Shown: positions 1,291-41,769, numbered from the stretch's first letter. The stretch: 64,000 nt of DNA from Amphiscolops sp. MND2022 (GCA_964187785.1 OZ076414.1:38936001-39000000), one strand, 5' to 3'. The notes: generated from the sequence alone by a model not told the origin. Translations and numbers: made by a program.

Positions 1291-1311
1291 ATATACAGAT
1301 TTTATATATAA

Positions 1312-1653: not shown

Positions 1654-1654
1654 G

Positions 1655-4161: not shown

Positions 4162-5146
4162 TGTCGCATATATTAATCTGAATAAAATTCAAAATGATTC
4201 CCCAAAAAAGTGAAAAGATTTATCGAATTCGTTCGCAGACCATGAGTAGTACAGTTTGAAACAACATCAAATGAAATACTTTTGAACAAACGTGTTTTTT
4301 TATTTTGTATATTTATAAAGCTTGAAAGCGCTCCTCAACTTATGAAAACCTGGACTGTCTTCTCCCCCTACTTCTTCCCCGCAAACCCGGCTGCCTTATC
4401 GCACGCCTCACTCCTTGAGGCTGATATTGCGCACCCAGGCGCTGAACGCGCTCTTCCTCAGCCTCCTCGACCTTCAGCGTGGTGGTCATCAAAGACGCTG
4501 GCCCTGGTCCCGTCAATACACAGTGTGCGGTCAATGGGGAAAACAGGACCACATCACCGGGCTCCTGGATGCAGTACACTGTATGTTCCCGGAACTGCAG
4601 GAAATCATCCCGGAGCGTACTAGGCAGGGAACGATGCCTTTCCAACGGAAGCACGATGCGTTTTCTGCGGAGGGTCTTCAACTCGCGTGTTCGAGTGGTG
4701 AAGAACCACAACTTCCTCCCCCTTTCCAGCTGGCTGACAACGCTTCCTCCCGGGTTGGAGTCTATGTGCCAACCACTCCATGCCCAACCACCACTTGCAA
4801 GGAGTGAGACGTGCAAGATGGAGTGCCCGCCAATACCTTGGACAACCTCCACATACTGCTCTCCTAGCGGGCCTGGGTATAGGGCCTCATATCGCCAGGG
4901 AGCTTCTGGAAGACCATCGAAAGAAGCGTTCTTCATCCGTGTGCCCTTGAAGGTTGCCAGAAGTTGCTTCTCACTGCGGAAACAAACAGCAACCCTCCTC
5001 GCTGCTTCGTTGGTGTAACGCAGCACAGGATTGCCACGTATAATAATGGGGATGTTCTGTTTCCTCAAGAAATCCGTTATGCCCCCCTCTCTCACCCGAG
5101 CCAAAGGAAGCCTCCCCGACTCTAACTCCATTATCATGCTTAATGC
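4162..5146 (+). repeat. BEL-A LTR, 3'-truncated copy
   Basis: Starts TGTCGC directly after the PPT and matches 15102-16086. Then breaks into a different BEL integrase fragment. Confidence 0.8.
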
Positions 5147-12220: not shown

Positions 12221-12244
12221 CTTATATACAGATTTTATATATAA

Positions 12245-12593
12245 GGGTGGCTGTAAATAGGTCGAATTTTTCTGGTCGAAAGGACAGAAGTGGAACATTT
12301 TGATCGAGTTGCAAGAATCGAATGGAATGCGGTCGAATTTTATCGTATTTGTTGTATGGCTCGGTCGCTTCGCTCCCTTCGCCAAGTAGCAACATTGAGG
12401 CATAGCCATATGGCACGTTGCTCCGCTTCGCTTCGCTCCTGCATTCAGGGCACTAGGGGTATGTGAACACATCTGACTACGTTATAAAAATTTCGATCCG
12501 AGTTGTTTTGATCCCATTCAAAAATTTGGTATGTCGACCTGAGGACTAACTCTGATTTTCGATCCCGTTCCTTCGACCAATTTCCACCCACCC
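12245..12593. mobile_element. MITE family X copy
   Basis: Duplicate of 1312-1653. Confidence 0.8.
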
Positions 12594-13628: not shown

Positions 13629-15101
13629 ACACTGAAGATGAAGCAAAAAGGCCAGAGCGACAGATCCTACACCCTAGAGGGGCTAAAGGGACTCCTTTGG
13701 CAAGAGTGGCAAGAACAGGGCCAGCAGTGTCCCTTGCAGTTACAAAGGTTGACAACTATGCAGGTGACATCTTTGACCTTTCGGTATTCAGTTCTTTGTC
13801 GAAGCTTCTCGGTAGTGGTGTCGGTAGTGGTGTATGTCAAACGATTTATACAACGCATTTGTAATCAAGGCACCAAGGGATCATTAGGCACCATCTCACC
13901 TGAAGAAATGACTGAGGCGGTGATGATTCTTCTGCGACAAGAACTTCAGCAGTGCGTGAAATGCAGCAGGTTCACAGCCAAGTTGAGTGCGCCGCTTATG
14001 GGAGACCTTCTTAAGGAACGCATCGACGTCCCAACCATAGCCTTTAAAAACGTGGGGCTAGACTTTGCAGGACCTTTTTTGCAAACCAAGCAGCAAGGCT
14101 AGAAGTCAGGACAAAGCCTACATGGCTTTGTTTGTTTGTTTTGCCAGTAAAGCTGTCCACATTGAAAGTGTATCCGATATGACCACTTTGGGGTGTATGG
14201 CAGCAATACGACGTTTTTTATCTCGAAGAGGTTGTCCCAGTCAAGTATTCTCTGACAACGGGACCAACTTTGTTGGCGCAGCCAACAAGATCCAGCAATG
14301 GCAAGAGGTTCTATCCAACAAGCATGACAACTCGCTGCAATCCCAATCTAGTGCTCTTGGCATTCGATGGAACTTCATATCCCCAAGGGCTCCTCATTTC
14401 GGAGGTTTATGGGAAGCGGCAGTAAAAAGTGCGAAGAAACACTTATGCAGAACGATGGGCAACAGTGTCCTGACATTTGAGGAGTTAACAACTCTTTTTT
14501 GTCAGATCGAGGCAGTGCTAAACTCGCGCCCAATCAGTGTAATGTCCGATGATCCCAATGAAGTTGAACCACTTACACCAGCACATCTTTCAATTGGACA
14601 CAGACTAGACGTGTTACTTTCTTTTTTATTGGACCAAACCCATGACGTGGACAACTGCAGTCCCTTAAAATGATGGTATCGCATTCAGAACATTATGTTG
14701 CATTTCTGGAACAGATGGACCAAAGAATACGTAACCACATTACAGGAAAGAAGCGAATGGAGACGAGAAACAAGCAATTTGAAAGTGGGCGACTTAGTTT
14801 TTATCTGCGATGACAATTCAGCACCTCTACAATGGCCAATTGGTTGCGTCCATAACGTCTACAATGGACCCGATAGTGCCGTCAGAGTAGTCAAGGTGAA
14901 AACTCCAACTGGAAAATACAATCGCTCTGTTCACAAGTTGAAAAAACTACCTATTGATACATAACCTCCTCAATCTTTAATGAAACACCCTGTAATCAGC
15001 TGTTTGTTAATGTTCGCTCATTGCCAACTCTTTTGATGCTGTATTTGTACGTCGTGTAACTTTTTAATGATTTGCGCCACGCAAAATCCAGGCGGGCCGT
15101 A
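13629..15101 (+). mobile_element. 5'-truncated BEL-A pol plus PPT (duplicate of 2689-4161)
   Basis: Integrase ORF 14065-14673 and C-terminal ORF 14695-14964. Confidence 0.9.
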
Positions 15102-16713
15102 TGTCGCATATATTAATCTGAATAAAATTCAAAATGATTCCCCAAAAAAGTGAAAAGATTTATCGAATTCGTTCGCAGACCATGAGTAGTACAGTTTGAA
15201 ACAACATCAAATGAAATACTTTTGAACAAACGTGTTTTTTTATTTTGTATATTTATAAAGCTTGAAAGCGCTCCTCAACTTATGAAAACCTGGACTGTCT
15301 TCTCCCCCTACTTCTTCCCCGCAAACCCGGCTGCCTTATCGCACGCCTCACTCCTTGAGGCTGATATTGCGCACCCAGGCGCTGAACGCGCTCTTCCTCA
15401 GCCTCCTCGACCTTCAGCGTGGTGGTCATCAAAGACGCTGGCCCTGGTCCCGTCAATACACAGTGTGCGGTCAATGGGGAAAACAGGACCACATCACCGG
15501 GCTCCTGGATGCAGTACACTGTATGTTCCCGGAACTGCAGGAAATCATCCCGGAGCGTACTAGGCAGGGAACGATGCCTTTCCAACGGAAGCACGATGCG
15601 TTTTCTGCGGAGGGTCTTCAACTCGCGTGTTCGAGTGGTGAAGAACCACAACTTCCTCCCCCTTTCCAGCTGGCTGACAACGCTTCCTCCCGGGTTGGAG
15701 TCTATGTGCCAACCACTCCATGCCCAACCACCACTTGCAAGGAGTGAGACGTGCAAGATGGAGTGCCCGCCAATACCTTGGACAACCTCCACATACTGCT
15801 CTCCTAGCGGGCCTGGGTATAGGGCCTCATATCGCCAGGGAGCTTCTGGAAGACCATCGAAAGAAGCGTTCTTCATCCGTGTGCCCTTGAAGGTTGCCAG
15901 AAGTTGCTTCTCACTGCGGAAACAAACAGCAACCCTCCTCGCTGCTTCGTTGGTGTAACGCAGCACAGGATTGCCACGTATAATAATGGGGATGTTCTGT
16001 TTCCTCAAGAAATCCGTTATGCCCCCCTCTCTCACCCGAGCCAAAGGAAGCCTCCCCGACTCTAACTCCATTATCATGCTTAATGCAGCCTCAAGCTCAT
16101 TCATCTCTAGAATAGCAAACTTTACTCTTTCTTCATCTATATTTGTGTTTGAAATTGTAATTTATAACTTTTAGTTGAAAACGAATTTTTGAGTTCATAC
16201 AAGCTCACTGTGACAACGCGCTGAATGTTATCTTTGTTTGATTGACCTTTCCCAACCCCATTCATTCTCATTGCTTTTGCTGAATACATGTTTTACGTTG
16301 CCTATTTGTTGTATAGACCGAATTGAACAAGGTGTTTTGCCAATGCATACAACATATTTGTTAGCCAATAGGCGTGCAGTTACAAAACTCCAATTGCATC
16401 ATACTGTGTCATTTGTATCCATTGACTGGTACATGAATTCTAAACATTGTGCTTCATTGTCAAAACCTCACCCACCAAGATGAGAGCAGTGAACTGTCTT
16501 GAACTGCAAAAACATGCAAAACGCAATAATCGTTTAGTTTAATAAAGCTTTAAAGCTTTAACTCAGTTTTGTTCGAGTCTCTTCAGCAGAAATCATAGTC
16601 TTACTTCCTGATAGTGGTCAGATGGTCCGCTATTCAAGAACCAAGGGCAAGATTACTTCGCAAGCTACAAGTAAAACCTTCTCGCAAACAACAGAGGGAC
16701 ATCGGCGCGAACA
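15102..16713 (+). repeat. BEL-A LTR (1612 bp), shared between the upstream truncated element and the downstream full-length element
   Basis: Preceded by a PPT-like tract, starts TGTCGC, ends GCGAACA (imperfect inverted termini), and is followed directly by a PBS and the gag ATG. Repeated at 21389-29273. Confidence 0.8.
15280..16104 (-). CDS. JmjC-domain (Fe(II)/2OG dioxygenase) protein encoded inside the BEL-A LTR, antisense to gag-pol
   Basis: 274 aa open ORF with H133-x-D135...H214 metal triad, K151 in GRKLWFF, 'QEPGDVVLFSP..AHCVLT' strand, and an Arg/Gly-rich tail. Confidence 0.85.
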   Translation of the reverse strand: MNELEAALSMIMELESGRLPLARVREGGITDFLRKQNIPIIIRGNPVLRYTNEAARRVAVCFRSEKQLLATFKGTRMKNASFDGLPEAPWRYEALYPGPLGEQYVEVVQGIGGHSILHVSLLASGGWAWSGWHIDSNPGGSVVSQLERGRKLWFFTTRTRELKTLRRKRIVLPLERHRSLPSTLRDDFLQFREHTVYCIQEPGDVVLFSPLTAHCVLTGPGPASLMTTTLKVEEAEEERVQRLGAQYQPQGVRRAIRQPGLRGRSRGRRQSRFS

Positions 16714-16715
16714 TT

Positions 16716-16733
16716 TGGTCCGCCGACCCGGAT
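16716..16733 (+). promoter_or_regulatory. Primer binding site of BEL-A
   Basis: TGGTCCGCCGACCCGGAT, 2 nt after the LTR end. Resembles the TGGTCCTTCGA(G/A)CCGGAT PBS common in BEL/Pao elements. Confidence 0.7.
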
Positions 16734-19700
16734 ATGGCTGAAGCAGAAACAAACAACTGGGAGGAAGCTGTTCGCAAACTAGTGCGTGTGAGGGGAGGAC
16801 ACAATGCAGCATTCACAAAGTACGAGACCAGAGTTGATGACCTCGTAGCAGATCACGCAGTTACCAGTGAGAAGCTCTGTGAAGCAGAGGCGCTGTTTTC
16901 TACGTTGCAGAACAAGTACAAAACAATCCTCAGATGGAACGCAGAGATCGAGCTCAAAATTGAAGACGATGCCAAGCTGGCACAAGAACAATGCACTAAT
17001 TGACAATATCAAGACCCAGTTGAAAGCGGGACTTACAGCAACCGCATAAACCTCTTCAGGTCTACCGACTACAGGACGCATGCGTCTACCAAAACTCCAA
17101 ATGCCAACTTTCACTGGTGCCTATACCAATTGGGTATCTTTCAGCGATCTCTTCCAAGCAGCAGTGGGCTCAAGCAGTCTTTTATCCGACTCCAAGAGAC
17201 TAAATTACCTGAAAGCCTGCATAAAGGGTGATGCTGCGAAAATAATCTGCTCACTTAGAATCACAGATGCCAATTACCCCATTGCGTGGCAGCTACTAAA
17301 GGACAGATACGACAACACACGAAGTATAGTGCATGCTCATTTGCAAGCTATTTCGTCTCAGTCGTCAATGAAGGTAGAATCTGGGTCTGGCCTCAGGAAA
17401 CTACACGAAACCACCAATGAGCATCTGAGGGCATTAGAAGCTTTGGGTCAACCAGTGAATCAATGGAGTGCTGTATTATCTTTTTGCATCGCCGACAAGC
17501 TCGATGCAGAATCACGGAAGCAATGGCAGCTCAAACATCCTGGCAAAAATGTCCTTCGCTGGGATGATTTATCCAAGTTCCTTGATGAAAGAAGAGCAGG
17601 GCATTAGACAGTGGTGCAATCAAAGTGATTCCCCAAGCCAGCAAGATGAACGATCAACGTGAGCCTCGGCATCAGTCTTACGCGGCTTCAATGGCGTGTA
17701 GTGAAATATGTGACGTTGAACATAAACTCCATGCGTGTCCAGAATTCAAGAAGATGTCAACGTCCCAGAAGTGCTTGTTTCAATTGTTTGCAGATTGGAC
17801 ACAGTGTCAGCGAATGTGGTTCTAAATTCAGCTGCAGGGAGTGCAAGGCTAAACACCACACTCTATTTCACCGACCAAAGACTGTGAGAACCTCGCATGA
17901 CGGGTCAAACAAGACAATAGCGAGGGTGTCGACTTCTGCCAACACAACAATCCAGTCTGCCGGTTCAGCAGGTCAGCAAGCCGACACTTCCGTCTTGACT
18001 GGGCATTGCGGGTCTGGATCTCCAAACGCCGGTGCTCTACTTCCAACGGCAATGGTACCCATCCACAATAAATCAGGTGGAAGGGTACATCTACGAGCCT
18101 TGTTAGATTCCGGATCACAGGTTAGCTTCATTACAGAGGCAACAGCGAAGGCACTAATGTTGAAAGTGCAAAAAACACCGTCAGCCATCATAACTCTGGG
18201 TGCTTCTAGCTCACAAAAGACATGCGGCGTGTTACCAGCTACGATTGCATGTTTGATAGACGTTAACTTTCACGTGATCCCGAAGATAACTGGTTCACTG
18301 CCTAATGCAATTGTGGATATCTCCCAGATGCGTCATCTGAAGCTGGCTTATCCCAAGTTCAGTGTACCTGGCAAAATCGACATGCTTCTGGGAGCCGACA
18401 TCATTGAAGATCTAATGCTGGACAATCGAATCGGGGACAATGGTCTCATCATTCGGGAGTCACTCCTGGGCTGGATTGTTTCGGGTCCAATATTGGAAAC
18501 GAATGGTGCAATCTCGACTCATCATGTGACAGTGGCAAGCGATGGGGAGTCAAACAAGTTACTAGCGAGATTTTGGAAACTAGAGAGTGTACCAGAAAAG
18601 AAGCACCGCACGATGGAAGAGGCTCAATGCGAAGAACATTTTGATGCAACAACCACAAGAGACTCAGCCGGAAGGTTCTATGTGAGGTTACCTTTCAAGG
18701 CAGAAGGTCACGTGCTGGGCCAGAGTTGAGCTTCTGCAATGAGACGATTCATCAATCTGGAAAACTAACTGAATTGTGAAAACTTGCTGAAAGTCAGGTA
18801 TTATGATTTTGTTAATGAATGTTTGAAATTGGGTCATCTAGAGAAGGTACCTGATGGAGAGTTGGAAAATGTCAACTACTACTACATGCCCCATCAATGT
18901 GTATTAAACGATGCTAGTACAACGACGAAGCTGCGGGTGGTCTTTGATGCTAGTGCTAAGACAACAGATCTTTCGCTAAATGGCTGCTTGATGGTGGGCC
19001 CGAAACTGCAAGACGACCTATTTAGCATTTTGATACGATTCCGATTCTTCAAGGTTGCGTTGTCGGCAGACGTTGCCAAGATGTACCGGCAGGTCGGTCT
19101 AGACCCCAGAGACAGGGACTTCATGCGACTCCTCTGGTGCTTCAGTGAAGACGAGCCTGTACAGACTTTTCGCTTGACGCGAGTGATTTACGGGGTAGCA
19201 AGTTCCGCTTATCACTCAATCAGATGCTGGAGGGAAACAGCCCAAATTGATCGTGTACCAAAGGCGGCCAAAGAAGCAATTCTACGTGATTTCCATGTGG
19301 ACGACATTTTGACATGAGCTAGTAGCATTGAGGAAGCTGAGCAGCTTCTCAATGATTTGATACAAACTCTTGAACGAGTTCAATTCGATCTGAAAAAATG
19401 GGCCAGCAATGTTCCTTCTCTTGTCTTAGCACTTCCCGCAGAGTATAGGGAAGCAAATGAAAACCTGAAGTTTTTTGACCCAACTCATACCATAAAAACA
19501 TTGGGTGTCACTTGGAACTATTTTGATGATTTGTTCTCGTTTGAGGTAGCTCACATCTCTGATGATATCAATGACGATGGAATTACAAAAAGACAAATGT
19601 TTAGTGACATCGCCAAAACTTTTGATCCTCTGGGCTGGTTGTCTCCGGTGACAATGCTACTAAAGAGCATGATGCAATGGGCCTGGCAAACAAATGTCGA

Positions 19701-21251
19701 CTGGGATCAGAAACCGCCAACCGAGATTGATGTGAGCTAGCGGACCTGGCGAAAGAATCTACACAGTTTAAAAGAGATCAAGTTGCAACGCTTTGTTCTG
19801 AGCGAAGAACAGCAAGAGCCTTTCGAGTTACATGTCTTCTGTGATGCCTCAGAGAAGGCATATGCAGCCTGTGTATACGTGATCTGAATCAATAATCGAG
19901 GTGAGAGGAGTTCCAATCTACTTGTGGCAAAATGCAAGGTCGCTCCACTGAAAACACAATCTATTCCTCGCTTGGAATTGTGCACTGTGCTTCTCGGATC
20001 CCGTCTGGTGTCGTTAGTCACTTGAGCGAATTTCTGTCAATATACGTGCAACAACGGGCTGGAGTGGTTCCACATCTGATCTCTGTTGGCTCTCTCGAGA
20101 ACCAAGTAACTGGACAACGTTTGTCGCGAACAGAGTTGACGAAATACAGCGCAATGACCGTGTTCATTGGCTACACATACCCACAGAGGACAATCCAGCT
20201 GATGCAGAGTCTCCTGGTGTTGAGCCAAGTGCACTCAAGAGCCTGGAAATTTGGTGGAAGGGACCAATTTGGTTACGTAGTGGAGTCCTACCGTCACAAC
20301 CGAAACTAAACTTCACTGAAGATGAAGCAAAAAGGCCAGAGCGACAGATCCTGCACCCTCGAGCGGCTAAAGGGACTCCTTTGGCAAGAGTGGCAAGAAC
20401 AGGGCCAGCAGTGTCCCTTGCAGTTACAAAGGTTGACAACTATGCAGGGGACATCTTTGACTTTTCGCTATTCAGTTCTCTGTCGAAGCTTCTCGGTAGT
20501 GGTGTCAGTAGTGGTGTATGTCAAACAATTTATACAACGCATTTGTAATCGAGGCACCAAGGGATCATTAGGCACCATCTCACCTGAAGAAATGACTGAG
20601 GCGGTGATGATTCTTCTGCGACAAGAACTTCAGCAGTGCGTGAACTGCAGCAGGTTCACAGCCAAGTTGAGTGCACCGCTTATGGGAGACCTTCTTAAGG
20701 AACGCATCGACGTCCCAACCAGAGCCTTTGAAAACGTAAGGCTAGACTTTGCAGGACCTTTTCTATGCAAACCAAGCAGCAAGGCCAGAAGTCAGGACAA
20801 AGCCTACATGGCTTTGTTTATTTGTTTTGCCAGTAAAGCTGTCCACATTGAGTGTGTATCCGATATGACCACTTTGGGGTGTATAGCAGCAATACGACGT
20901 TTTAAATCTCGAAGAGATTGTCCCAGTCAAGACGTGGACAACTGCAGTCCCTTAAAATGATGGTATGGCAATCAGAACATTATGTTGCATTTCTGGAACA
21001 GATGGACCAAAGAATACGTAACCACATTACAGGAAAGAAGCAAATGGAGACGAGAAACAAGCAATTTGAAAGTGGGCGACTTAGTTTTTATCTGCGAAGA
21101 CAATTCAGCACCTCTACAATGGCCAATTGGTTGCGTCCATAACGTCTACAGTGGACCCGATAGTGCCATCAGAGTAGTCAAGGTGAAAATTCCAACTGGA
21201 ATATACAATCGCTCTGTTCACAAGTTGAAAAAACTACCTATTGACACATAA
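16734..21251 (+). pseudogene. BEL/Pao family A gag-pol (disrupted): gag/DUF1759, zinc knuckles, protease, RT, RNase H, partly deleted integrase
   Basis: LPKLQMPTFTG..TNW..F, CFNCLQIGH..SEC, ALLDSGSQVSFIT, YYMPHQCV..TTKLRVVFDASAK, FHVDDILT, HVFCDASEKAY, PRLELC, RLDFAGP. Multiple stops and frameshifts. Confidence 0.92.
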
Positions 21252-21591
21252 CCTCCTCAATCTTTAATGAAACACCGTGTAATCAGCTGTTTGTTAATGT
21301 TCGCTCATTGTCATTTCTTTTGATGCTGTATTTGTACGTCGTGTAACTTTTTTTTGATTTGCGCCACGCAAAATCAAGTCGGGTGGTATGTCGCATTTAT
21401 TAATCTGAATAAAATTCAAAATAATTCCCCAAACAAGTGAAAAGATTTATCGAATTCGTTCGCAGACCATGAGTTGTGCAGTTTGAAACAAAATCAATCA
21501 AATGAAATACTTTTGAACAAACGTGTTTTTTTATTGTGTATATTTATAAAGCTTGAAAGCGCTCCTCACCTTATGAAAACCTGGACTGTCT

Positions 21592-22392
21592 TCACCCCCT
21601 ACTTCTTCCCCGCGAACCCGGCTGCCTTATCGCACGCCTCACTCCTTGAGGCTGATATTGCGCACCCAGGCGCTGAACGCGCTCTTCCTCGGCCTCCTCG
21701 AACTTCAGCGTGGTGGTCATCAAAGCCGCTGGCCCTGAACCCGTCAATACACAGTGTGCGGTCAATGGGGAAAACAGGACCACATCATCGGGCTCCTGGA
21801 TGCAGTACACTGTTTGTTCCTGGAATTGCAGCAAATCATCCCGGAGCGTACTAGGCAGGGAACGATGCCTTTCCAACGGAAGCACGATGCGTTTTCTGCA
21901 GAGGGTCTTCACCTCGCGTGTTCGAGTGGTGAAGAACCACAACTTCCTCCCCCTTTTCAGCTGGCTGACAACGCTTCCTCCCGGGTTGGAGTCGATGTGC
22001 CAACCACTCCATGCCCAACCACTTGCAAGGAGTGAGACGTGCAAGAAGGAGTGCCCGCCAATACCTTGGACAACCTCCACATACTGCTCTCCTAGCGGGT
22101 CTGGGTATAGGGCCTCATATCGCCAGGGAGCCTCTGGAAGACCATCGAAAGCAGCGTCCTTCATCCGTGTGCCCTTGAAGGTTGCCAGAAAGTGCTTCTC
22201 ACTACGGAAACAAACAGCAACCCTCCTCGCTGCTTCGTTGGTGTAACGCACCACAGGTTTGCCACGTATAAAAATGGGGATGTTCTGTTTCCTCAAGCAA
22301 TCCGTTACGCCCCCCTCTCTCACCCGAGTCAAAGGAAGCCTCCCCGACTCTAACTCCATTATCAGGCTTAATGCAGCCTCAAGCTCATTCAT
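21592..22392 (-). CDS. JmjC-domain protein, third copy (BEL-A 3' LTR)
   Basis: 266 aa open ORF with the HxD...H triad intact. About two dozen amino-acid differences and one codon deletion relative to 15280-16104. Confidence 0.85.
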   Translation of the reverse strand: MNELEAALSLIMELESGRLPLTRVREGGVTDCLRKQNIPIFIRGKPVVRYTNEAARRVAVCFRSEKHFLATFKGTRMKDAAFDGLPEAPWRYEALYPDPLGEQYVEVVQGIGGHSFLHVSLLASGWAWSGWHIDSNPGGSVVSQLKRGRKLWFFTTRTREVKTLCRKRIVLPLERHRSLPSTLRDDLLQFQEQTVYCIQEPDDVVLFSPLTAHCVLTGSGPAALMTTTLKFEEAEEERVQRLGAQYQPQGVRRAIRQPGSRGRSRG

Positions 22393-22777
22393 CTCTAGAA
22401 TAGCAAACTTTACTCTTTCTTCATCTATACTTGTGTTTGTCTTTATTGTGATTTATACCTTTTAGTTGAAAACAAATTTTTGAGTTCATGCAAGCTCACT
22501 GTGACAACGCGCTGAATGTTATCTTTGTTTGATTGACTTTTCCCAACCCCATTCATTCTCATTGCTTTTGCTGAATACATGTTTTACGTTGCCTATTTGT
22601 TGTATAGACCGAATTGAACAAGGTGTTTTGCCAATGCATACAACATATTTGTTAGCCAATAAGCGTGCAGTTACATAACTCCAATTGCATCATACTGTGT
22701 CATTTGTGTCCATTGACTGTTACATGAATTCTAAACATTGTGCTTCACTGTCAAAACCTCACCCACCATGATGAGAG

Positions 22778-23126
22778 GGGTGGCTGTAAATTGGTTGAAT
22801 TTTTCTGGTCGAAAGGACAGAGGTTGAACCTTTTGATCGAATTGTAGGGATCGAATGGAATGCGGTCGAATTTTATCGTATTTGTTGTATGGCTCGGTCG
22901 CTTCGCTCCCTTCGCCAAGTAGCAACATTGAGACATGGCCATATGGCACGTCGCTCCGCTACGCTTCGCTCCTGCATTCAGGGCACTAGGGGTATGTGAA
23001 CATATCTGACTACGTTATAAAAATTTCGATCCCAGTTGTTTCGATCCCATTCAAAAATTTGGTATGTCAAACTGAGGACTAACTCTGATTTTCGATCCCG
23101 TTCGTTCAACCTATTTCCGCCCACCC
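22778..23126. mobile_element. MITE family X with 8-bp TSD GATGAGAG
   Basis: TSD at 22770-22777 and 23127-23134. The empty site is visible in the paralogous LTR (16479-16486). TIRs GGGTGG.../...CCACCC. Confidence 0.9.
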
Positions 23127-23588
23127 GATGAGAGCAGTGAACTGTCTTGAACTGCAAAAACATGCAAAACGCATAAATCTTTCAGTTAATTAAAGCTTTA
23201 AAGCTTAAACTCAGTTTTGTTCGAGTCTCTTCAGCAGAAATTATAGTCTTACTTCCTGATAGTGGTCAGGTGGTCCGCCATTCAAGAACCAAGGGCGAGA
23301 TTACTTCGCAAGCTACAAGTAAAGCATTCTCGCAAACAACAGAGGTGTCAGGTTCAGATGGCTGGAAGCCGACCAGCTGACCAGCTGACCAGCTGACCGA
23401 CAGCCGATGAAACTATTGAGGTCAAAATAGATAGCAGACTTGACAGGTACCTGCCAGACAGTGAACTGAATTGTACTTTTTCTGGCACCTGCTGTGACCT
23501 GTAAACATTAGTGTATATATCGCTTCCAATTTCATTTGTGTCATTCCAATAATCAATTCAAATATTAATCACTGCATCATTTTTGAGA

Positions 23589-23602
23589 GGTTATGGGCCC
23601 AG
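23589..23602 (+). promoter_or_regulatory. Copia-type PBS (half-tRNA-iMet type)
   Basis: GGTTATGGGCCCAG directly after the 5' LTR, the same motif as the Drosophila copia PBS. Confidence 0.8.
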
Positions 23603-23787
23603 ATCATAACTATCGACGACCAACTCCACCTCAACGATCACAGCCTAACCAGCCCAGATCAACCAATTGACGTGGAGTCAAGCAGTCAGCAGACGAGATG
23701 ACAGCCACCCATTCGAAGTTGGAGAAACTCTCCTTCTCTGGCTAAGACGAGGACTTTGCGGCGTTCAGCGAGCAGTTCGAGGCGAGG

Positions 23788-28820: not shown

Positions 28821-29273
28821 TACTAGAAGACTTAATTCCCTTTTTATATAAAGGAACATTCAAGCAGTTGTAATGTAGGCTTCTACAGACACGGTCAAGT
28901 GCAGCGTGCACAGAATTGACTTGAAGTTTGTGCCATCAGCAGATAACATGGCGGACTTCTTCACAAAAGGGTTGGGCAGAATCAAGACGATACAGCACAC
29001 GAAAGGACTTTCAGCCAAGCGGGGGTGTCAGGTTCAGATGGCTGAAAGCCGACCGGCTGACCGACAGCCGATGAAACTATTGAGGTCAAAATAGATAGCA
29101 GACTTGACAGGTACCTGCCAGACAGTGAACTGAATTGTACTTTTTCTGGCACCTGCTGTGACCTGTAAACATTAGTGTATATATCGCTTCCAATTTCATT
29201 TGTGTCATTCCAATAATCAATTCAACTATTAATCACTGCATCATTTTTGAGAAGAGGGACATCGGCGCGAACA

Positions 29274-31114: not shown

Positions 31115-32154
31115 ACAATTGATTCATTTGTTCATAATTCGATCGATGACTGATCATAAATATTTCTGTTACACTGGATTAAAAATGTGCCATGGTCATG
31201 ATGAAATGAAAAATATTTTCGTTGAATTCGAGTAGAAAATTTCTAGCGAAAATCGTGGTTTTTGGTCGAACCCCTCAGTCTTGGTACCAGAAGACTGGCA
31301 ATCATTCACTGAATTGGCAATCAATTGCAATGACTGGCTGCAACTATTAAATTGGAAAACAATAGCAGTGTCACGTAAACTTATTGACACTTCCCAATAA
31401 TTGCACTAATTGTCACTAAGATTTCTCATTTTATGAGTTCTCTACACCAAAACAATCATCATCTTGGCCTGAAAAGTGAAAATCATAATCTGTGTTGTTT
31501 TTTTTTTCAAATTCTGCCGAATCTCCCAGTTTCTTCATCAACCTCACCTATTACTTGACTATTTTAATTACTGAAATAGTCAAGTAACTAAAACAGCTTA
31601 GAGGGATGATTAATATCTAAAGTCAAAAATGGGAATAAGAGAGTTTTACGCCACCTTCGGACAATGATTTTGTGCACATACTCCTCCTTCTTGAATTGGT
31701 GGTAAATCACCCCCACTCTGGTCCATACTTTCTCGATTCTTTGGTCGCTTTTCATCAGGTTAAAGAAATTCACTCTGGGGCTGATAGATCTTCAAATACC
31801 TTCACGTGTTAAACATCCGGTTTTTTGCCAGCTCTTGTTTCTCAATCAGTAGTGTTGACGCTCAAGATGTCAAGGCCAACTTTTCTAAACCAATACTTGA
31901 CTAATTTGCAATCGCACAAAATGAAGACGTGATATTGTGAATCAAATTATACTTTGTTAAACTTGATCACGCTTTTTCAGTTTTGTAAATTTTCGTCACT
32001 GCAAGTTCAATACTGAATGAAACTTTCATGCTGAGAATAAATTCAATCTTTCTTTTGTAAACCAATTTACAAAGTCAACGCTATCCAGCAACATTATTGG
32101 TGCTATACGACCCGGGAGTCGACTCAGAAGTACGATTACTGTTCGAAATCGATC

Positions 32155-33153
32155 ATGATGTCACTTGAAACTAAAACTATAGAGCAACTGCGTAGATTAA
32201 GGTTCGCAATTTTGGGCATTATAACAAAAAATGCCATCAAAATCAATGCTATTGCAGACAAAGCACCGGTCAACGTAACAAACGAAGACCTGGCAACCCT
32301 CAGAGCATTGCTTGAAGTGATGCAAGCGAAATTGACTTTCGCCCTACAACTCAACACAGTCATCCTTGATAAATCAGAAGAAAGTGACGATGCGTTTGAT
32401 ATTGAATTCCAAGCAGGAAATGAATTTGAAGTGAAACTTCAGACCCAAATACAAGAAATTGAAGGTCTCATCGACAGATCAACAGCCCAACCGATTGATT
32501 CTCACTTTCCACAGCCAAGAACCAGTAGAACAATGGGAGTCAAAATGCCAAAGTTTGACATACCGAAGTTTTCGGGGCGATACAAGGACTGGATTCCCTT
32601 CTATGATCAATTCATAGCAGCTGTCGACCAAAACGACACAATACCCGATATACAGAAATTGAACTATTTGAAGGCGTCTTTAAAGGACGAAGCAGCAACA
32701 CTATTGGCTCATTTGCCATTGACAGCATCCAATTACCAGGTTGGCATTAAATTACTTGAAAATCAGTATTCGAACAAGCGATTGATTCTAAAGGCTCATA
32801 TGGAGGAAATTCATCAAGCGCCAAGCCTACGCACTGAGTCTGCAGGTTTGAGGCGTCTACAACTAACGCTGGACGAAAATTTGATGGCTATGGAGGCCAT
32901 GAAGATTGACACTTCACTCAATTGTTTCTATTGGGTACATATTATCTCTGAAAAACTTGACGCAGAGTCAAGAAGGCAATGGGAGTTGGATAGCCCAGGG
33001 GATAATATTCGGAAAATCAACGAATTGCGAGAGTTCATCGCAAAACGGGAACGAGCATTAGAAGCATCAGATAAAATGAAACAATCAACAACCGCAAAGG
33101 GAAAAACATTTCCACACTTCTCCGAAAAATCCGCATCCATTTCAAAGTTATAA
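32155..33153 (+). CDS. BEL-B gag (DUF1759-type)
   Basis: MPKFDIPKFSG.YKDWIPFYDQF, QKLNYLKASL, L...Y.N.RLI motifs. Confidence 0.85.
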   Translation: MMSLETKTIEQLRRLRFAILGIITKNAIKINAIADKAPVNVTNEDLATLRALLEVMQAKLTFALQLNTVILDKSEESDDAFDIEFQAGNEFEVKLQTQIQEIEGLIDRSTAQPIDSHFPQPRTSRTMGVKMPKFDIPKFSGRYKDWIPFYDQFIAAVDQNDTIPDIQKLNYLKASLKDEAATLLAHLPLTASNYQVGIKLLENQYSNKRLILKAHMEEIHQAPSLRTESAGLRRLQLTLDENLMAMEAMKIDTSLNCFYWVHIISEKLDAESRRQWELDSPGDNIRKINELREFIAKRERALEASDKMKQSTTAKGKTFPHFSEKSASISKL

Positions 33154-33224
33154 AACTACAGCATCAATTTGTCCAGCGTGTTCAGATGTAACATCGGATC
33201 TTCAATTGCCAAAAGTTCCAGAAA

Positions 33225-36200
33225 ATGTCACTGACAGAAAAAAGGAATCTAGCATACACTTCCAAGCTTTGTTTCAGTTGCTTGAGAGAGGGTCATATGA
33301 CAAAAGATTGCCCTTCTACATCGACGTGCAAGAAATGCCACAAAAATCACAACACGTGGTTACATGCAGACAAAGTCGACAACAGCAAGTCGAAAACAAT
33401 ACAAGAAACTAATCTACACCATTCGTCAGTGAAATTTAATTCAGTTCTCCTTCCCACTGCAGTAATTCCTGTAGTTGCCTCCGATGGATCCATAATTCAA
33501 TGCAGAGCATTGCTTGACAGTGGAGCTCAATTGAGCATGATAACAGAAGAGTGCACCCAAAATCTTAAACTCAAGAGAACACCAATTTCAATCCAGTTGA
33601 ACGGCATAGTGAGTTCTAAATTTGTGAGTACGTCTTCTGTCGACTTTGAGATTCGCCCTACTCATTTCCAAAAACTGGATGTAAAGGCTCTGGTAAGACC
33701 AAAATTGACTGAATTTCTACCGTCTCAGTCAATCACCAATGCACAATGCTTTCATGCAAAGTCGGTAAAATTGGCTGATCCAGACTTCCTGATGTCAAGA
33801 CGAGTTGATATTTTGGGATCGGATATCTACGAAAGCATAGTATTGGATGGCAAATTGGAAGAAGAGAATGGCCTCCATTTGTGGAAAACCATTTTTGGAT
33901 GGGTTGTGTCAGGAAAACTACCACGAGAAACGACCTCTGCAGTGAATTCAGTAACCATTCTGAAGACGGATATTGATTTGAGAAGATTCTGGGAGATTGA
34001 GGAAGTGCATTCTCCGAAGCAACTAACAGCAGAAGAAATGCAGTGTGAGCAACATTTTCTTGAAACCACACAAGAAGCAGAAGACGCAAGATTCAAGGTG
34101 AAACTGCCATTCAAGCCAGAAGTTAGTAAATTGGGCGAAAGTTTCACACAAGCACGACGTAGATTCATGTCACTAGAACGACGTTTGATAGCAGACCCTG
34201 AACTCCATGAACGTTACAGGATTTTCATCAGAGAATTCATGGATTTGGGACATCTAGAAGAAGTACCACTTAATGAAATAGACAAAGATCCATCTCAACT
34301 GTATTATTTGCCACATCATTGCGTTTTCAAGGAGGAATCAACGACAACCAAATTAAGAGTGGTTTTCGATGGCTCAGCGAAAACGAGCACCGGGCAGTCC
34401 TTGAATGAATCTCTGATGGTGGGTGCAAAACTTCAGTCAGACTTGTACTCGACACTTCTGCGTTTTAGACTACACAAGGTGGCTTTATCCGGTGACATTG
34501 CCAAGATGTATCGTCAAATTGCATTAGCCGATGAAGATAAAGACTTTCATCGCATTTTGTGGCGGGATAGTCCTTCCGAACCACTAAAACATCTGCGAAT
34601 GACGAGGGTCACTTATGGCATCGCGTCATCTTCCTATCATTCGATACGATGTCTCCAGGAAGTGGGAAAGAAGTCTACCGATGAAGCAGTCAAATTGGCC
34701 ATTTTCAATGATTTCTCCGTCGATGATTTCATTGGAGGTGCACCAGATAAAGACACAGCATCATCTTTAGTACATCAATTGATTGCCGCATTGAAGAAGC
34801 ATGGATTTGAACTACGCAAATGGACAAGCAGTGACTCATCGATAACGCTCTCCCTACCTGAAAAATTACGCGAAACAGAAGAATCGTCAAAAATTCTTGA
34901 TAAAGACTACCATATGAAGACACTAGGTATCCGTTGGAACCCCAACCCTGATACTTTCACATTCAATGTGACTCTGGATGCCATGAAACAACATACGAAG
35001 AGAACTTTGTTATCAGACGTATCGAAACTCTTCGATCCTAGTGGATGGCTTGGTCCTGTAATTATTCGCTATAAAGGTCTGCTTCAAAAACTTTGGATTC
35101 TCGGAATTGATTGGTACTCTGAATGGTGACATCAAAGAGTGGCTATCAGCGCGAACCAGCTTAAAACAGCTCGAAGGTTTTCACATTCCACGCTGTGTTT
35201 TGCCTGATGGCGAAATTGAAGACTTTCAACTACATCTTTTCACAGATGCAAGTGAAAAGGCTTACTCTGCGAACGTGTATAGCAGAATCAAATCTAAGGA
35301 TCGTTCAGTTTCAACGAGACTTCTGGTTGCAAAAACACTTGTGGCACCTGTGAAAACAGTCAGTTTGCCTCGATTGGAGTTATGTGGAGCACAACTGGGA
35401 ACCAAATTGATGAGTATCGTCATTGAGTCTCTACAGTCCTCGAAATTGACCATCAATTCTACACATGCATGGACAGATTCGACAATCGTGTTACAATGGT
35501 TGGATCAACTACCACGCACATGGACAACATTCGTTGCAAACAGAGTGTCCGAGATTCAAGAATCAATGCCTAGAGCAGAATGGAACCACATTCCGTCGCA
35601 ACAAAATCCAGCTGATCTATCTTCTCGTGGAATGGAGCTAAATATCATATCTTCATATCTTCAAACCTCTGGTGGCAAGGTCCTCAGTTTCTCGGAGTTA
35701 ATGAAAATCAATGGCCAAAGCAACCGATGCTTTCTGGAACTCCGCCAGAAATTCGATCGAAGGAATCTGACATGAAGCAAACAATTGGAGTTGTGGATAC
35801 GGGAAATCATTCTAGCGGTTTTATTCCCATAGAATGTTATTCCAGTTTCAACAAGCTATTGCGAATAATGGCCACTGTTCATGTAGCTAGTCAACATATG
35901 AGAAAACACAAACGCTCAAATTACATCACAGTAAGTGACATTCACGAGCAAAGAATGGAGTAATCAGATGCCACCAAATAGCGTACTACACGAAAGAGCT
36001 TAGATTATTGCAAAACGATCTGCTGTTGCCAAAAGACAGCAAAATTTTGAACTTGACCCCGATTTATGACGAAGAAACAGGAACATTGCGAGTTGGAGGA
36101 CGTTTATCTCAAGGACAATTCAGAGAAAGCAAAAAGTTTCCATTTTTGATTGCTAAAGATTCACGACTGGCATTTTTGATCCTACAGCCTTTCCATGAAG

Positions 36201-37220
36201 CGATCCTTCATGGCGTGGGGCCTGCTGACTTTGAATGCAAGTCGCGAAGAGTATTGGGTCCCTGGTGGTAGAGAACTCCTCAAGAAAATCATCAAACAGT
36301 GCGTCAAGTGTAGCTGTTTTGAAAACAAAGTTCCATATCAACTCATGGCTGATTTACCCGCTGAAAGAATAACAGTAGCAAAACCCTTCCAAAAAACAGG
36401 TCTAGATTTTGCAGGACCAATTCCCACAAAAACATCACCAAAAACATACATCGCCATATTTGTTTTTGTTGTGAAAGCGGTGCACATAGAGCTAGTGGGA
36501 GACCTCAGGGCTTCCTGAGAAAATATTCAGTGACAATGGAAGGAATTTCATTGGAGCAAGGAACGATATCCTAAAGGTTCAAAAATTACTCTCACTGGAT
36601 TGCAGCAACGAATCTTTGGGAAGTTTTGTAACCCACGAAGGAATTGAATGGGAAACAATGCCACCTCGTGCTCCACATTTTGGCGGATTGTGGGAGGCAT
36701 CCGTAAAAAGCCTAAAACGTCACCTGCGAAAAACAGTCGGTCTACAGATTCTTTCTTCGAAGAACTGAACACAGTAGTCATACAGATTGAATCAATTCTT
36801 AACTCGGGACCTCTAGCAGACATGTCGAATGACCCCAACGATTTACAATCAATCACCCCAGCGCATTTCTTGCTAGGGAGAGCAGCGTCTGACATTCCCA
36901 ACATGACGAACAACATGGACAAAAACATATCGTTGTCTCAAAGATTCAAGCCGCTGGAACGGATTAAACGATCTTTTTGGAAATCATGGCATCGTGATTA
37001 TCTTGTGACACTTCAAGTGCGTAAACGATGGCTCCACTCAGGTCCCAAGTTTTCAGAAGGTGACTTAGTCCTGATTGCAATGGCAATTGGCGAGAATTGA
37101 AAAATTATACTGTGGAAATGACGAAATCAACAGAGTTGCGAAGTTGAAAGTTGGCACTGGATTCCTGATTCGACCTATAGTGAAACTTCGAAAGCTTCCT
37201 GTAGAAAGCATGCATTGATT
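33225..37220 (+). pseudogene. BEL-B pol (knuckles, protease, RT, RNase H, integrase), frameshifted and with deletions in integrase
   Basis: CFSCLREGH, ALLDSGAQ, YYLPHHCVF..STTTKLRVVFDGSAK, FSVDDFIG, HLFTDASEKAY, PRLELCGA, TGLDFAGP, FWKSWHRDYL, RPIVKLRKLP. Confidence 0.92.
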
Positions 37221-37769
37221 TCAGTCAATGAATCGAGAACCCACTCTTATTCAGAATTGAAAACAATCATTGAAAAAAAATTACCTATTATTTCTACCCC
37301 AGACAACCCCAAAAAAGCCCGAAAAAAATCATTGTTTTCAAAAGAAATTCTAAAAAATCAAACCGAACAATTAAAGTACTGACGATTGCCGAGCCTACGA
37401 GCATATTGGAAGCAATTTATCTGCAGCCATCAAAATTGGCAAATTTTTTGAAAATCACCCCTTTCAATTGGCACTGAGAAGATTATTAATTAATATCTGA
37501 CAGTTTTATTACTGAAAAAGACAAGAGAGATAGAGAAGAAGGAAAACCGGTGATAGAGCATTACTCACTTGTTAAAATACAGCGACTGGTCTTTTTTTCT
37601 TTGGGTCTTTACCAGTCACAGACGCTGATTTTATATTTTTAGCATTCAGCTTTTTGTTCGGTGAAAGCAATCTGTATGCCACATATTCTGCAATTAAGTG
37701 AATGTATTACCTCAATCGTATGAACACTTTAGACTGACCTAAACTACTCAACCACTAACCTTTTCTTTG

Positions 37770-38791
37770 CTGCTGCCGTTCCTGAAATTGCATGCGTACA
37801 TCTTTCAAATTATTCAACTTTCTCTGTTTATTTGAAACAGATGGCCGGCCTCTTTTAGATGGACTTTTTGGAGAATTTCCTGTTCGACATTGACACCAAT
37901 TGTCCGATTGCCTGTTTTGGAATTTTTAGCAGTTGCAAGAGCTTCAGAACACTTTTGAGGATTTGATTTCTTCAAACCTACTCTCAGGACTTCATTACAA
38001 ATGCCAAAATTTGGTGACTAAATGGGATTTTAAATGCCTGTCCGTAACATCGTTAGCTTCCCAACCACTATCAAGAAAAGATCCAGTTGAAATAGTCAGG
38101 ACAGAATGAGCGCACAAAGATGGTTGAATTATCATATCAGAGACATCAGTGATGTGATAGAAAATATTTTTCTCACAAGGTAATTTTGGACCCTTCAATA
38201 CCCAGCTGACGAAAGACTCGATCGTGGAAGTCATAGCAAACAATCTACTTGATGCAGCACCGCGTTTGGCTATCATGAACAATTTCCTGCCGATGGGAGT
38301 TAGAGAAACAGATATGTCCCCGCCCTCTTCTACGTGACCATCAGTGAACCAACGTCCAACGCCAATAATTGCTGAGGAATGAGCGCCTTTGACATGACTA
38401 GGTGCAGTGTAGAAGCTCAGTCCTGTCATATCTAATGAACTAGCAAAGGATGTGGATAAATCTTCAACTGGGTTTATTTTTTTTGTTTCTCTTGTGGCAG
38501 TATTATATTTGAATTTTCGGAAGATTGCAGCTAATTGGCGCTTATTGGTGCATTTTTGGACAGCTCGCAAAAATTCTTCATCAAATTTAAATAGACGCTG
38601 ATTGCAGACAAAATTGGTTGGCAAATCCAGACATCATCAAAAATATCTAAACTACTATTATGCGCCTCCTCTTTGATCGAATTCAAATCAAAGCAATTAG
38701 TGCCATCTATTGTTGCAAGCGAATTCCAACCCAAATCTTTCATTCCCTCGCTGGAACTGCACAGTTGAATCAATGAATCCAAATCTGACAT
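37770..38791 (-). pseudogene. Divergent JmjC-domain gene carried antisense between BEL-B pol and the 3' LTR (core ORF 37995-38624)
   Basis: FTDGHVEEGG...GRKLFMI...DMIIQPSLCAHSVLT gives T94, H97, E99, K114, H173. A frameshifted N-terminal ORF lies at 38531-38791 and a frameshifted basic tail with KRGRP at 37842-37856. Confidence 0.75.
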
Positions 38792-41769
38792 TGCTGATCT
38801 GGAAGAGAATTATATCATTAATGTACCGAACAGATCATCTCATTTGAAGAATGTGCATTCTTCAAGGGGCCCGGTATGTTGACGCTCAAGATGTCAAGAC
38901 CAACTTTTCTAAACCAATACTTGACTAATTTGCAATCGCACAAAATGAAGACGTGATATTGTGAATGAAAATATAATTTGTTAAACTTGATCACGCTTTT
39001 TCAGTTGTTTGTAAATTTTCGTCACTGCAAGTTCAATACTGAATGAAACTTTCATGCTGAGATTAAATTCAATCTTTCTTTTGTAAACCAATTTACAAAG
39101 TCAACGCTATCCAGCAACAAGTAGGTTGATTTTCTTGATTCGGCTACCAAATTAAACAATGATTGGTTTCTATTTACCTACACGAGTGTCAGCCTATGCT
39201 CAATGGAACTGTCGTTCGCCGTTACACTAGCACCAATAATGTTGGCAATAGCAACCACTTTTCTCCTTATAAATTGAAGAAACCCTCTCGCTGGATGATA
39301 TGAAACAGTTGTTAACGGTCTTTTTTGAGATGTAAAACCATTCACTATAATACGTACTAGGTATGCGTGCATCGCAAGGTTCGTGTACTTAGAAGGCGGG
39401 AACTGCATTAGTCAGGCTTTTGGTACCGAATAACTGTAATTAGTGCCAGAGCCTGGTACCAAAGACTCCGAAGATGCATTTGTTGTTTGATTAGATTGTA
39501 CTGTAATACGAATTTCTTCATTTATTCAATTCATATTCTCGTGTATAAACTCTTTAAAATGAGTTAATGCTAATGCTAGAATACTGTATAAGCTAGATGT
39601 GGCTGTTTTTGGTGCTGAAAAGATTTCACTCATTAGGACTTCGGAAAATATTTAATTTCTCCAAGTATTATCCGGGTCATTGTTTTTATTGTCTCGATAT
39701 AAACATTTTCCGTAAGATATTCTTCCTGTCGTTCACAATTGTATCACTTCGGTCAAAGGGGACGACTTTCTGTCAATTTAAAGGAACCAATCACGCTAAT
39801 ATTTTCGTTTTCACATTCGCATTTACTTTGAAAAAGTTCCGTGTTCTCTCCCAAAACGTGCAGCAGTAGAAAGCATTAGTGCGTTTCGTAATTTCCCGAA
39901 GTCCTTTACTCCACGGGCACCCACCTATGTTTTAGATTACCATTCCTAATTAGCTGCTACACTTACATTTGAATTTTAATCATGTAACACCTTCACACAT
40001 GGTAATTTCTCTGTTGCATGATGTAAAACATTGATGAAAGTACTTTCACCTTCCAAAACCATTGTCTATTTTTATCTCATTAAATCTCTCATATTGATAA
40101 GTCGATGAAAACTCAAGTCATTTGGCTGTTTTTTTTCACTTGCTCATTCCTACTATTTTTTTTGGGATCTTAGATAAACTTTTATTCACAAACTGTTTGA
40201 ATCTTTTTCGAGTAATGAATGGATCCTCGTCAACGACCACTTTCTCAGTGTTATATGGAAAGCTCTATAAAACTTCTGTCTTGTTTTTCTGACTCGTTCT
40301 GAAGATGGATGTTCTTTTTGAAGAAATGAATGAAGTAGCGTTCGTAATCTTCGCCCAAAAATGATACAGGAGTTATTCAGTGTTTGAAGTTCAATTCTAC
40401 CAATGTATTGTAATGTAGAAGCCCAAATAATTCAATGATTTAAAATAGTTTTTCTTGCTGTGAGTTTATACATTTTAATACAGTTAGCTATTCACTTGAA
40501 GCAATGATAAAGTGTGTGGATATTCGCCATAGAATTATTTTATTCCCGTTTAATTATTTTTAATTTTACAGAAATCTTCAAGGGCTCATGCCCGCAGTGG
40601 GAAACCCTCAATTACAAACAATTTCTGATAAAATCGTACTCGAAAGAACAGCTTCGATTTTTTATCGCTTTGTTAATGTACTTTCCAAGAGTTGGAAAAA
40701 AATTTTCCTGTGGAATCGCACCTGTGCAAAAATTTTGACTACCTGTGCAATCGTAACTTTTTTCTCCCGAACTTTCAAGAAAATCAAGTTTTTCGCCACT
40801 GTGCGGCTTTTTCGACAAAAAAATTCATTTGGTCATATGGTACCCCCTTTACTTTAAAAAAAAGTTTTTGGCTTGGAATAAATGTTTTCCGAACTTAGAA
40901 GGCCTCCTTTTCGGGACTGAGACTTTTCCCGATTTTTTTCGACAATTTGTTTTTTTTTCGGCACCGCGACTTTGAAATTTTTTTCATTTGCTCATAGGGT
41001 CACCTCTTCATTTTCATTTTTTTTCGACGTGTAAAAAGTTCCTTTCTCGGCACTGTGAGACTTTTTTCCAAAGAAAAAATTTAACTTCCAGAAACATTTG
41101 ATGTTTCCAGTTGGGAAAAGCGGTTTTCGAGTCTTTTGGCTATCTTCCTTCGTGTTTTTTTCCGGCACTGTGATTTTGATGATTTTTTGCATATTTAACC
41201 CTAACGAACCTAGTGGTGCTTTAAAGCAGCCGATCTTTTTTCCAAATTCTGATTCCTTTTGCCAGTAGCCCATTTTCTCTAGTACAGTTTTCAACAATTA
41301 ATTGGTACCTAGGTTGATTTGAATGGCACAAGCATTAGAAAAAATGAATATGTCTCCAAAGCTGAGAAAAATGTTTTTTTTGCACAAAAATGGTTATTTT
41401 TTCCCAAAATTCAGTTTTTGACGAAATCCAGTTTTCTCAAAAGTCTTTGATCAATAGAAAAAAAAGCAACCACATACCCTTCCACAGCAAGTCCTGGTGC
41501 AGCGAACCCCAATTATATTCTGCTACTACAAGCCCCCGAAGTGTGGAACTGCCGCGAAGCGGTGGTACCGGAAAAAGGCTAAAATTCTGAAGGGGCGAAC
41601 AGCGAGAGAGCTCACCTGACCAAAATGAAAGCCCAATACCAGACCTTTCAAACGCGCTAGAGTTTGTTTCTCTGGTACGCGTAGTTGTATTGATGAATTT
41701 TTTGAAATTTTTTAAAAACGCCCAGGTCAATCGGGGTTAATAAACTTGGATCATTTTTAGGAGTCGGAA

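Follow-up and report, generated by a model that had tools for sequence, protein, structure and literature searches.

A JmjC-like gene carried antisense within the long terminal repeat of a BEL/Pao retrotransposon of Amphiscolops sp.

The gene and the repeat that carries it

This study concerns a 64,000-nucleotide stretch of the genome of Amphiscolops sp. MND2022 (GCA_964187785.1 OZ076414.1:38936001-39000000), referred to throughout as the window, and a BEL/Pao retrotransposon within it, family A, whose long terminal repeat (LTR) carries an intronless gene on the antisense strand. The gene (Table 1) encodes a protein of 274 amino acids that resembles JmjC oxygenases. An original prediction made from the sequence of the window had pointed to this open reading frame (ORF) and its catalytic residues, and both were found at 15280-16104, with H133-I-D135 and H214 in the positions of the Fe ligands and K151, within GRKLWFF, in that of the 2-oxoglutarate lysine. 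The ORF is located 178 nt from the 5' end of the LTR and 609 nt from its 3' end, and its G+C content of 53-60% stands against 30-39% in the LTR flanks. H133, K151 and H214 are unchanged in all 25 copies compared, and D135 is replaced once by E. Both further copies that had been announced for the window are present on the minus strand, though neither is whole: the N-terminus of the copy at 4340-5182 is foreign, since a 10.9-kb duplication has its edge there and cuts off the LTR at position 985, and the copy at 21592-22392 lacks its last 8 codons and retains the catalytic residues. Two solo LTRs (L021 and L028) hold an intact ORF. The gene lies inside the LTR; each element hence has two of them, and some solo LTRs retain it intact, as the original prediction had it.

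The repeat at 15102-16713 (1,612 bp) starts with TGTCGC, finishes with GCGAACA, and so has TG...CA ends. It serves both as the 3' LTR of a 5'-truncated upstream copy and as the 5' LTR of the downstream element. Its boundaries were mapped by aligning the window LTR, with 1 kb on either side, to 30 genomic loci. Similarity to 5' LTR copies (L005, L007, L008, L013, L022, L023) begins exactly at 15102 and continues into gag; similarity to 3' LTR copies (L010, L014, L015, L016, L020, L026) enters from pol and halts exactly at 16713; and similarity to three solo LTRs is confined to 15102-16713, these being flanked by the 5-bp target duplications TACTG, CGAGA and ATGGT/ATTGT. Junctions starting downstream of 16104 had been named beforehand as the observation that would move the gene out of the LTR; there were none, all 5' junctions beginning at 15102. 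At both 15102 and 16713 the contigs of four public sequencing runs have heterogeneous loose ends, and the summed depth of these contigs is about 5-fold higher exactly between the two positions (depth is not copy number, as the tool itself warns).

The adjoining priming signals agree with these limits. The primer-binding site sits 2 nt past the LTR end, and a polypurine-tract-like motif, CCAGGCGGGCCGTA, directly precedes the LTR start. Together with the TG...CA ends and the 5-bp target duplications, these signals are the features by which BEL/Pao membership is recognized, and DUF1759, Peptidase_A17 (Pao), integrase and DUF5641 were all matched, in window ORFs and in a frame of 1,613 codons from a sister copy. 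The repeat is a true LTR, confirming what had been proposed from its terminal letters, and its length exceeds the 0.2-1.2 kb given for BEL/Pao LTRs (PMC3118150). About 350 intron-bearing tRNA-Tyr(GUA) genes, whose 3' end corresponds to the family A primer, form a head-to-tail array with a period of about 212 bp elsewhere in the genome (G000:C6:56171000-56195000, L066).

Complete family A elements measure about 8.69 kb. A six-frame search of the 1.07-Gb genome returned at least 144 matches to the JmjC protein, many of them paired about 7.07 kb apart, and the two LTRs of an element differ by 0.5-2%, as befits young copies.

Identity and predicted structure of the protein

An exhaustive HMMER search of 1.84 billion representative proteins recovered 72 relatives, all from ENA or Logan assemblies; a word-indexed protein search returned close relatives only. 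Alignment of 34 sequences showed that H133, G149 and K151 are nearly invariant and that two stretches, WHxD...VSQLxRGxKLWFF and QEPGDxVxxPxxxAHxVL, are conserved across the relatives. The Pfam JmjC model was matched by 23 of the 34 relatives (E <0.01; best E 3.6e-7), and a relative, P0055, scored 25.1 bits on it. When the 34-sequence profile was compared with the sequences of the PDB, it matched ceKDM7A (E 6.4e-7) and PHF8 (1.5e-5), and also KDM7A and PHF2 (range to 8e-3), with JMJD6 at 0.39 and TYW5 at 0.88. The profile alignment with ceKDM7A and PHF8 superposes WHxD, GxK and AHxVL on the ligand residues, and K151 falls on the lysine of GEKIFY. A profile of 6 sequences gave only a chance match among PDB sequences.

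In structure prediction, the shallow 6-sequence alignment yielded a model with a predicted local distance difference test score (pLDDT) of 29.5; the AlphaFold model built on 34 diverse relatives reached a pLDDT of 85.8 and a predicted template modelling score of 0.83, with a predicted cupin (double-stranded beta-helix) fold and a disordered basic C-terminal tail at about residues 252-274 (252-269 in the AlphaFold model). Foldseek returned JmjC proteins only (E about 1e-7), and the top VIA-align matches were likewise JmjC. The JmjC fold and oxygenase nature of the protein are well supported by these profiles and models, and the JmjC identity claimed in the original prediction was recovered by HMMER profile, AlphaFold and Foldseek alike.

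From its residue 1 onward, the protein aligns with residues 80-356 of PHF8, that is, with the catalytic domain only. The N-terminal PHD finger, a reader of H3K4me3, that characterizes the KDM7 subfamily (PHF8, PHF2, KIAA1718, ceKDM7A) is not present, and Pfam found no domain besides JmjC in the 274 residues. Consequently, the predicted product is best described as a JmjC catalytic domain alone. In profile and model it comes closest to the KDM2/KDM7 demethylases, whose reader domains it lacks. A structure search independent of Foldseek ranked PHF2 first (14.3), followed by ceKDM7A (13.8), KDM2A (13.4) and JMJD5 (13.0).

The models also leave room for a different enzyme. By predicted structure the protein is not clearly separable from the JmjC-only hydroxylases: JMJD5, FIH, JMJD7, TYW5 and JMJD6 lead the Foldseek matches in the PDB, TYW4, JMJD8 and JMJ30 lead those among AlphaFold-SwissProt models, and a JmjC domain bare of histone-reader modules would suit such an enzyme. 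The protein might then be a hydroxylase or a non-histone demethylase that modifies a host protein, the Gag/Pol of the element or RNA, at a step of the life cycle other than chromatin silencing. Such cargo has a precedent in orchids, whose Ty3/Gypsy elements are reported to bear AlkB, a 2-oxoglutarate oxygenase with RNA as its substrate (PMC9289625). The sequence profile, however, favours KDM7, PHF8 and PHF2 (E 6e-7 to 8e-3) over JMJD6, and we regard this alternative as unlikely, if worth keeping in sight.

It is also conceivable that the fold has been kept for a non-catalytic role, such as binding methylated tails or a host silencing factor, or serving as a decoy for them. The top structural match, PHF2, has limited intrinsic demethylase activity, in line with such a role. 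Against it, the H-x-D...H motif and the lysine are invariant in the 25 copies and nearly so in the 34 distant relatives, a pattern expected if catalysis itself is selected. A non-catalytic role is accordingly quite improbable.

Selection on the gene

Only actual copies entered the measurements of selection. For 25 copies in register, the median ratio of nonsynonymous to synonymous substitution rates (dN/dS) was 0.47 in the JmjC frame (dS 0.093); four of the five other frames gave 0.9-1.46, and the antisense frame with matched third positions gave 0.55. Comparisons with more distant copies (dS 0.45-0.68) lowered the JmjC value to 0.19-0.33. The ratio for the cargo, whose comparison with gag-pol had been proposed as a check, is in neither case near 1, and the gene is under purifying selection and was maintained as the element lineage diversified. 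Two plus-strand ORFs that overlap the gene (15355-15747 and 15419-15958) were dismissed as genes on account of a dN/dS of at least 1 in their frames. In the young family A, all stretches of the LTR are about equally conserved, and a conservation scan cannot single out its regulatory parts.

The gag-pol genes of the same elements have dN/dS values of 0.46-0.53, which puts the constraint on the cargo level with that on the core genes. The original prediction had set an intact cargo against a dead gag-pol. This holds for the window copy, with its two deletions and 9 stops, and not for the family: gag-pol frames of sister copies run to 1,418-1,613 codons and differ from the longest by one stop only. 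Since gag-pol is nearly open in those copies, the contrast is local to the window copy, and selective retention of the cargo over gag-pol is not borne out by the similar ratios (about 0.5 for gag-pol, 0.47 for the cargo).

These values bear on the simplest alternative, in which the gene is carried along passively: a piece of a host gene would have been captured and would be open just because its copies are young. Such youth is apparent in the small distance between LTR pairs, the ratio within the family is just moderately low, and antisense expression is a prediction from sequence. Nevertheless, dN/dS falls well below that level at greater depth, the catalytic residues are conserved, the constraint equals that on gag-pol, and open full-length homologues at 48%, 44% and 38% identity occupy the same position in other element families and samples. 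The hitchhiker explanation is already disfavoured, and we consider it very improbable.

Between the two LTRs of one element, the JmjC dN/dS is 0.70, from few changes, and singleton changes have a nonsynonymous to synonymous ratio of 122:50, including 6 stops, with 38:28 for shared changes. These figures matter for the suggestion that the host has co-opted the gene, such that LTR-borne copies, and solo LTRs especially, constitute a dispersed host gene family. The intact ORFs of L021 and L028 would fit such a family, as would the summed contig depth, which suggests that LTRs far outnumber internal regions, within the caveat on depth noted above. A ratio between LTR pairs that is not clearly below 1 and near-neutral singletons instead fit decay after insertion, and co-option has very little probability in our estimate.

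Related elements and the origin of the layout

Homologues of the gene were found in other retrotransposons, and there are two layouts: inside the LTR in 3 elements, family A included, and internal in 2. A second family in the same genome has a cargo 48% identical with an intact ORF of 278 amino acids, and it too is LTR-borne, because the gene lies upstream of gag and recurs 7.0 kb away. A metagenome contig with an intact Pao gag-pol of 1,755 amino acids bears an antisense homologue of 260 amino acids located 243 nt past pol, the start of which recurs at the opposite end of the contig, as expected for an LTR-borne gene.

The internal layout is seen in family B, a second BEL/Pao element of the window (Table 1), whose distant JmjC-like gene ends about 85 nt short of the 3' LTR; a G-rich motif similar to the family A polypurine tract also abuts that LTR. 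The frame of the family B gene changes near 38625, a sign of a frameshift or a very short intron. The other internal case is a Gypsy-like element from another sample (L061:4589-17390; 12.8 kb, with LTRs of about 420 bp), where the homologue is again antisense and has integrase on one side. Between it and the 3' LTR lie three sense ORFs of 111, 154 and 490 amino acids that lack a Pfam match and may be env-like. A further homologue of 296 amino acids, 27% identical, lies beside 1.78-kb tandem repeats on a 13-kb contig (L039:8001-8891); no recognisable retroelement genes were found near it on that contig.

The cargo of LTR-borne carriers is 38-48% identical to that of family A, against 19-26% for internal carriers. 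Since the LTR-borne genes are the most similar and the internal ones far more distant, we take the internal position to be the older of the two. The LTR-borne layout was probably derived from the commoner arrangement exemplified by family B, in which pol and the 3' LTR flank an antisense gene, and the change would have come about when the plus-strand priming site moved past the gene. A relic polypurine-tract motif was sought on the far side of the JmjC gene, and none was found. If true, such a shift would bring a formerly internal accessory gene within the LTR, doubling its dose and allowing it to persist in solo LTRs.

Signals for expression

The LTR contains a candidate antisense core promoter, a TATA-like box, GTTATAAAT, that precedes the ATG of the gene by 57-64 nt. 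Most copies also have an upstream ORF of four codons (ATG AAG AAA GAG TAA; 16132-16146, antisense) about 30 nt before the JmjC start. On the sense strand, the gene lies upstream of the AATAAA at 16541 and is on that account presumably within the U3 region.

Short elements with terminal inverted repeats have inserted in LTR positions of about 1160-1482. They fall into at least three kinds, with lengths of about 349, 543-557 and 690 bp, and are flanked by target duplications of 8-10 bp. The insertions (window 22778-23126; L034-L038 and L068) occupy seven sites of a 320-bp stretch that corresponds to 16261-16583 of the window, and they were found in 7 of 17 3' LTRs and in none of 16 5' LTRs (Fisher p = 0.007). 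One array consisting only of tandem LTRs also bears such an element. The stretch may be open chromatin in 3' LTRs and not in 5' LTRs.

The rearranged window

The window array was mapped against a sister copy of family A (Table 1). Self-comparison showed that 14641-16486 recurs at 20928-22777 with 95.6% identity and that 1-5146 recurs at 10934-16086 with 99.65% identity. The latter is a 10.9-kb direct duplication, to all appearances recent and either segmental or tandem, and it includes a fragment of pol together with LTR positions 1-985. The 3' LTR of the window element is split by a 349-bp miniature inverted-repeat transposable element (MITE; 22778-23126) and then by a Copia-type element of 5.9 kb (23346-29252), with gag, integrase, RVT_2 and LTRs of about 213 bp, which has inserted near the 3' LTR end.

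Two further features of the window lie apart from family A. Between the two retroelement nests, an uninterrupted ORF of 526 amino acids (29534-31114) has a Major Facilitator Superfamily domain (E 5e-34). A large inverted repeat spans 43927-60225 (43927-50949 against 60225-53095, about 97% identical) and contains internal 84-bp tandem repeats.

Table 1. Positions in the window of the family A and family B features, with the evidence for each.
Feature	Position	Strand	Evidence or remark
LTR fragment, LTR positions 1-985	4162..5146	+	Within the duplicated 10.9-kb block
3' part of pol (integrase, DUF5641) of the 5'-truncated family A copy	13630..15101	+	Window ORFs; sister-copy map
Polypurine-tract-like motif CCAGGCGGGCCGTA	15084..15101	+	Abuts LTR start
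Family A LTR	15102..16713	+	Self-comparison; 5', 3' and solo junctions; target duplications; depth step and loose ends
AATAAA, antisense	15239..15244	-	36 nt past the JmjC stop codon
JmjC-like accessory gene, 274 amino acids, intronless	15280..16104	-	Pfam, HMMER, AlphaFold, Foldseek, copy alignment
TATA-like box GTTATAAAT, candidate antisense core promoter	16160..16168	-	In 17 of 18 full LTRs aligned
AATAAA, sense	16541..16546	+	Read from the LTR sequence
Primer-binding site, 18 nt	16716..16733	+	Exact complement of the 3' end of the genome's tRNA-Tyr(GUA) plus CCA
gag-pol internal region of the window element	16714..21388	+	Deletions of 294 and 395 bp relative to L035; 9 in-frame stops
3' LTR	21389..23345	+	95.6% identical to 15102-16713
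JmjC copy in the 3' LTR, 266 amino acids	21592..22392	-	3-nt deletion; premature stop costs last 8 codons
Last 21 nt of the 3' LTR	29253..29273	+	Resumes beyond the Copia insertion; AGAGG duplicated
Family B BEL/Pao element, 243-bp LTRs, target duplication AGTAG	31853..39119	+	Self-comparison
Family B distant JmjC-like gene, internal	~37770-38876	-	Immediately precedes the polypurine tract and 3' LTR

A proposed role in the life of the element

Overall, the explanation that we favour, with a probability of roughly 0.55, is that family A carries a selected, LTR-borne antisense JmjC gene whose product acts as a demethylase against silencing of the element. Because the gene is located in the presumed U3, the genomic RNA would carry it in reverse-complement form, and reverse transcription would copy it into both LTRs. 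The antisense LTR promoter, with its TATA-like box about 60 nt before the ATG, would then transcribe the gene from integrated DNA, making each LTR, solo LTRs included, a self-contained expression unit. The basic tail may bring the protein into the nucleus, where it would function as an Fe(II)/2-oxoglutarate oxygenase, most likely one that demethylates lysines in the manner of KDM2/KDM7, on H3K9me2/1, H3K27me2, H4K20me1 or H3K36me2. Such demethylation would weaken heterochromatic silencing of the element. Demethylation of the KDM7 type (H3K9me2/1, H3K27me2, H4K20me1) is plausible, given the closest sequence and structure matches, and the histone-demethylase or anti-silencing role proposed originally is likewise plausible.

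The idea can be extended. Hosts silence retrotransposons largely by small-RNA-guided H3K9 methylation. We know of few transposon counter-measures, and in animals of none that is an enzyme removing histone methylation. A histone demethylase encoded by the element as a counter-defence, with every LTR, solo ones among them, as an autonomous source of an enzyme that erases H3K9-type marks and with the 3' LTR kept open for antisense transcription, is a tentative and less likely possibility; the last part is hinted at by the MITE insertion hotspot, which is seen in 3' LTRs and not in 5' LTRs. If true, the conserved JmjC gene of BEL/Pao and Gypsy-like elements would be a directly testable candidate for counter-defence.

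Several observations weigh against the explanation as a whole. The 274-residue protein by itself scores 23.0 bits on Pfam JmjC (PF02373; E 1.2e-4), just short of the gathering cut-off of 24. Within the family, the comparison of shared with singleton changes is merely suggestive (p = 0.064). The canonical antisense AATAAA occurs in the window copy only, most other copies having AATATA-like sequences, and the 3' end of the predicted mRNA is uncertain. Searches for sequencing runs returned no RNA run, and the four public runs that contain the sequence yield short contigs that behave as genomic DNA and are for that reason uninformative on expression. Finally, only a small number of cases bear on which way the layout changed.

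Comparison with known systems

Full-text literature searches returned no paper on a JmjC cargo in an LTR retrotransposon, and two relevant surveys mention neither JmjC nor antisense cargo; the statement that no JmjC-bearing BEL family is known stands in the literature searched. The closest host enzymes, KDM7/PHF8/PHF2 and KDM2 (JHDM1), have a PHD finger, CXXC, F-box or C-terminal helical domain. The family A protein is without these, is 10-14% identical to them, totals 274 amino acids and is encoded by a retrotransposon, and its substrate is a prediction. The JmjC-only hydroxylases (JMJD5/KDM8, FIH, JMJD7, TYW5, JMJD6 and JMJD8) are alike in their single domain, their size and their top Foldseek rank, but their profile similarity is far weaker, as the values for JMJD6 and TYW5 indicate.

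Transposon-borne factors that act on host epigenetic marks include VANC of Arabidopsis VANDAL elements and the TET/JBP proteins of fungal KDZ transposons. These belong to plant and fungal DNA transposons and are unrelated proteins, whereas family A is an LTR retrotransposon of an animal with a JmjC product.

The sag gene of mouse mammary tumour virus (MMTV) is a sense-strand protein-coding ORF in the U3 region of a retroviral LTR, expressed from viral promoters. It shares with the family A gene its place within the LTR, which it makes longer and with which it is duplicated; the family A gene differs in being antisense, in having its own candidate promoter and in encoding a predicted enzyme. 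The family A LTR would stand beside that of MMTV as a rare protein-encoding LTR.

The HBZ gene of human T-cell leukaemia virus type 1 is an antisense retroviral gene driven from the 3' LTR (PMC10186651). Family B has exactly this layout, in which the accessory gene is antisense, stands at the 3' end and has its promoter in the LTR. HBZ, however, is a basic leucine zipper factor with its promoter alone in the LTR; in family A the whole coding region is in the LTR, and the product has a predicted oxygenase fold.

Coding capacity beyond gag-pol is also described for plant LTR retrotransposons with additional or antisense ORFs (aORFs; PMC7264820), for the AlkB-bearing orchid elements cited above, and for bdelloid elements, in which the same extra ORF is common to different retroelement types (PMC5408684). 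The extra ORFs of these elements are internal or fused to pol, and no JmjC cargo is reported among them. The sharing of one ORF among bdelloid retroelements nevertheless resembles the sharing of the JmjC gene between BEL/Pao and the Gypsy-like element.

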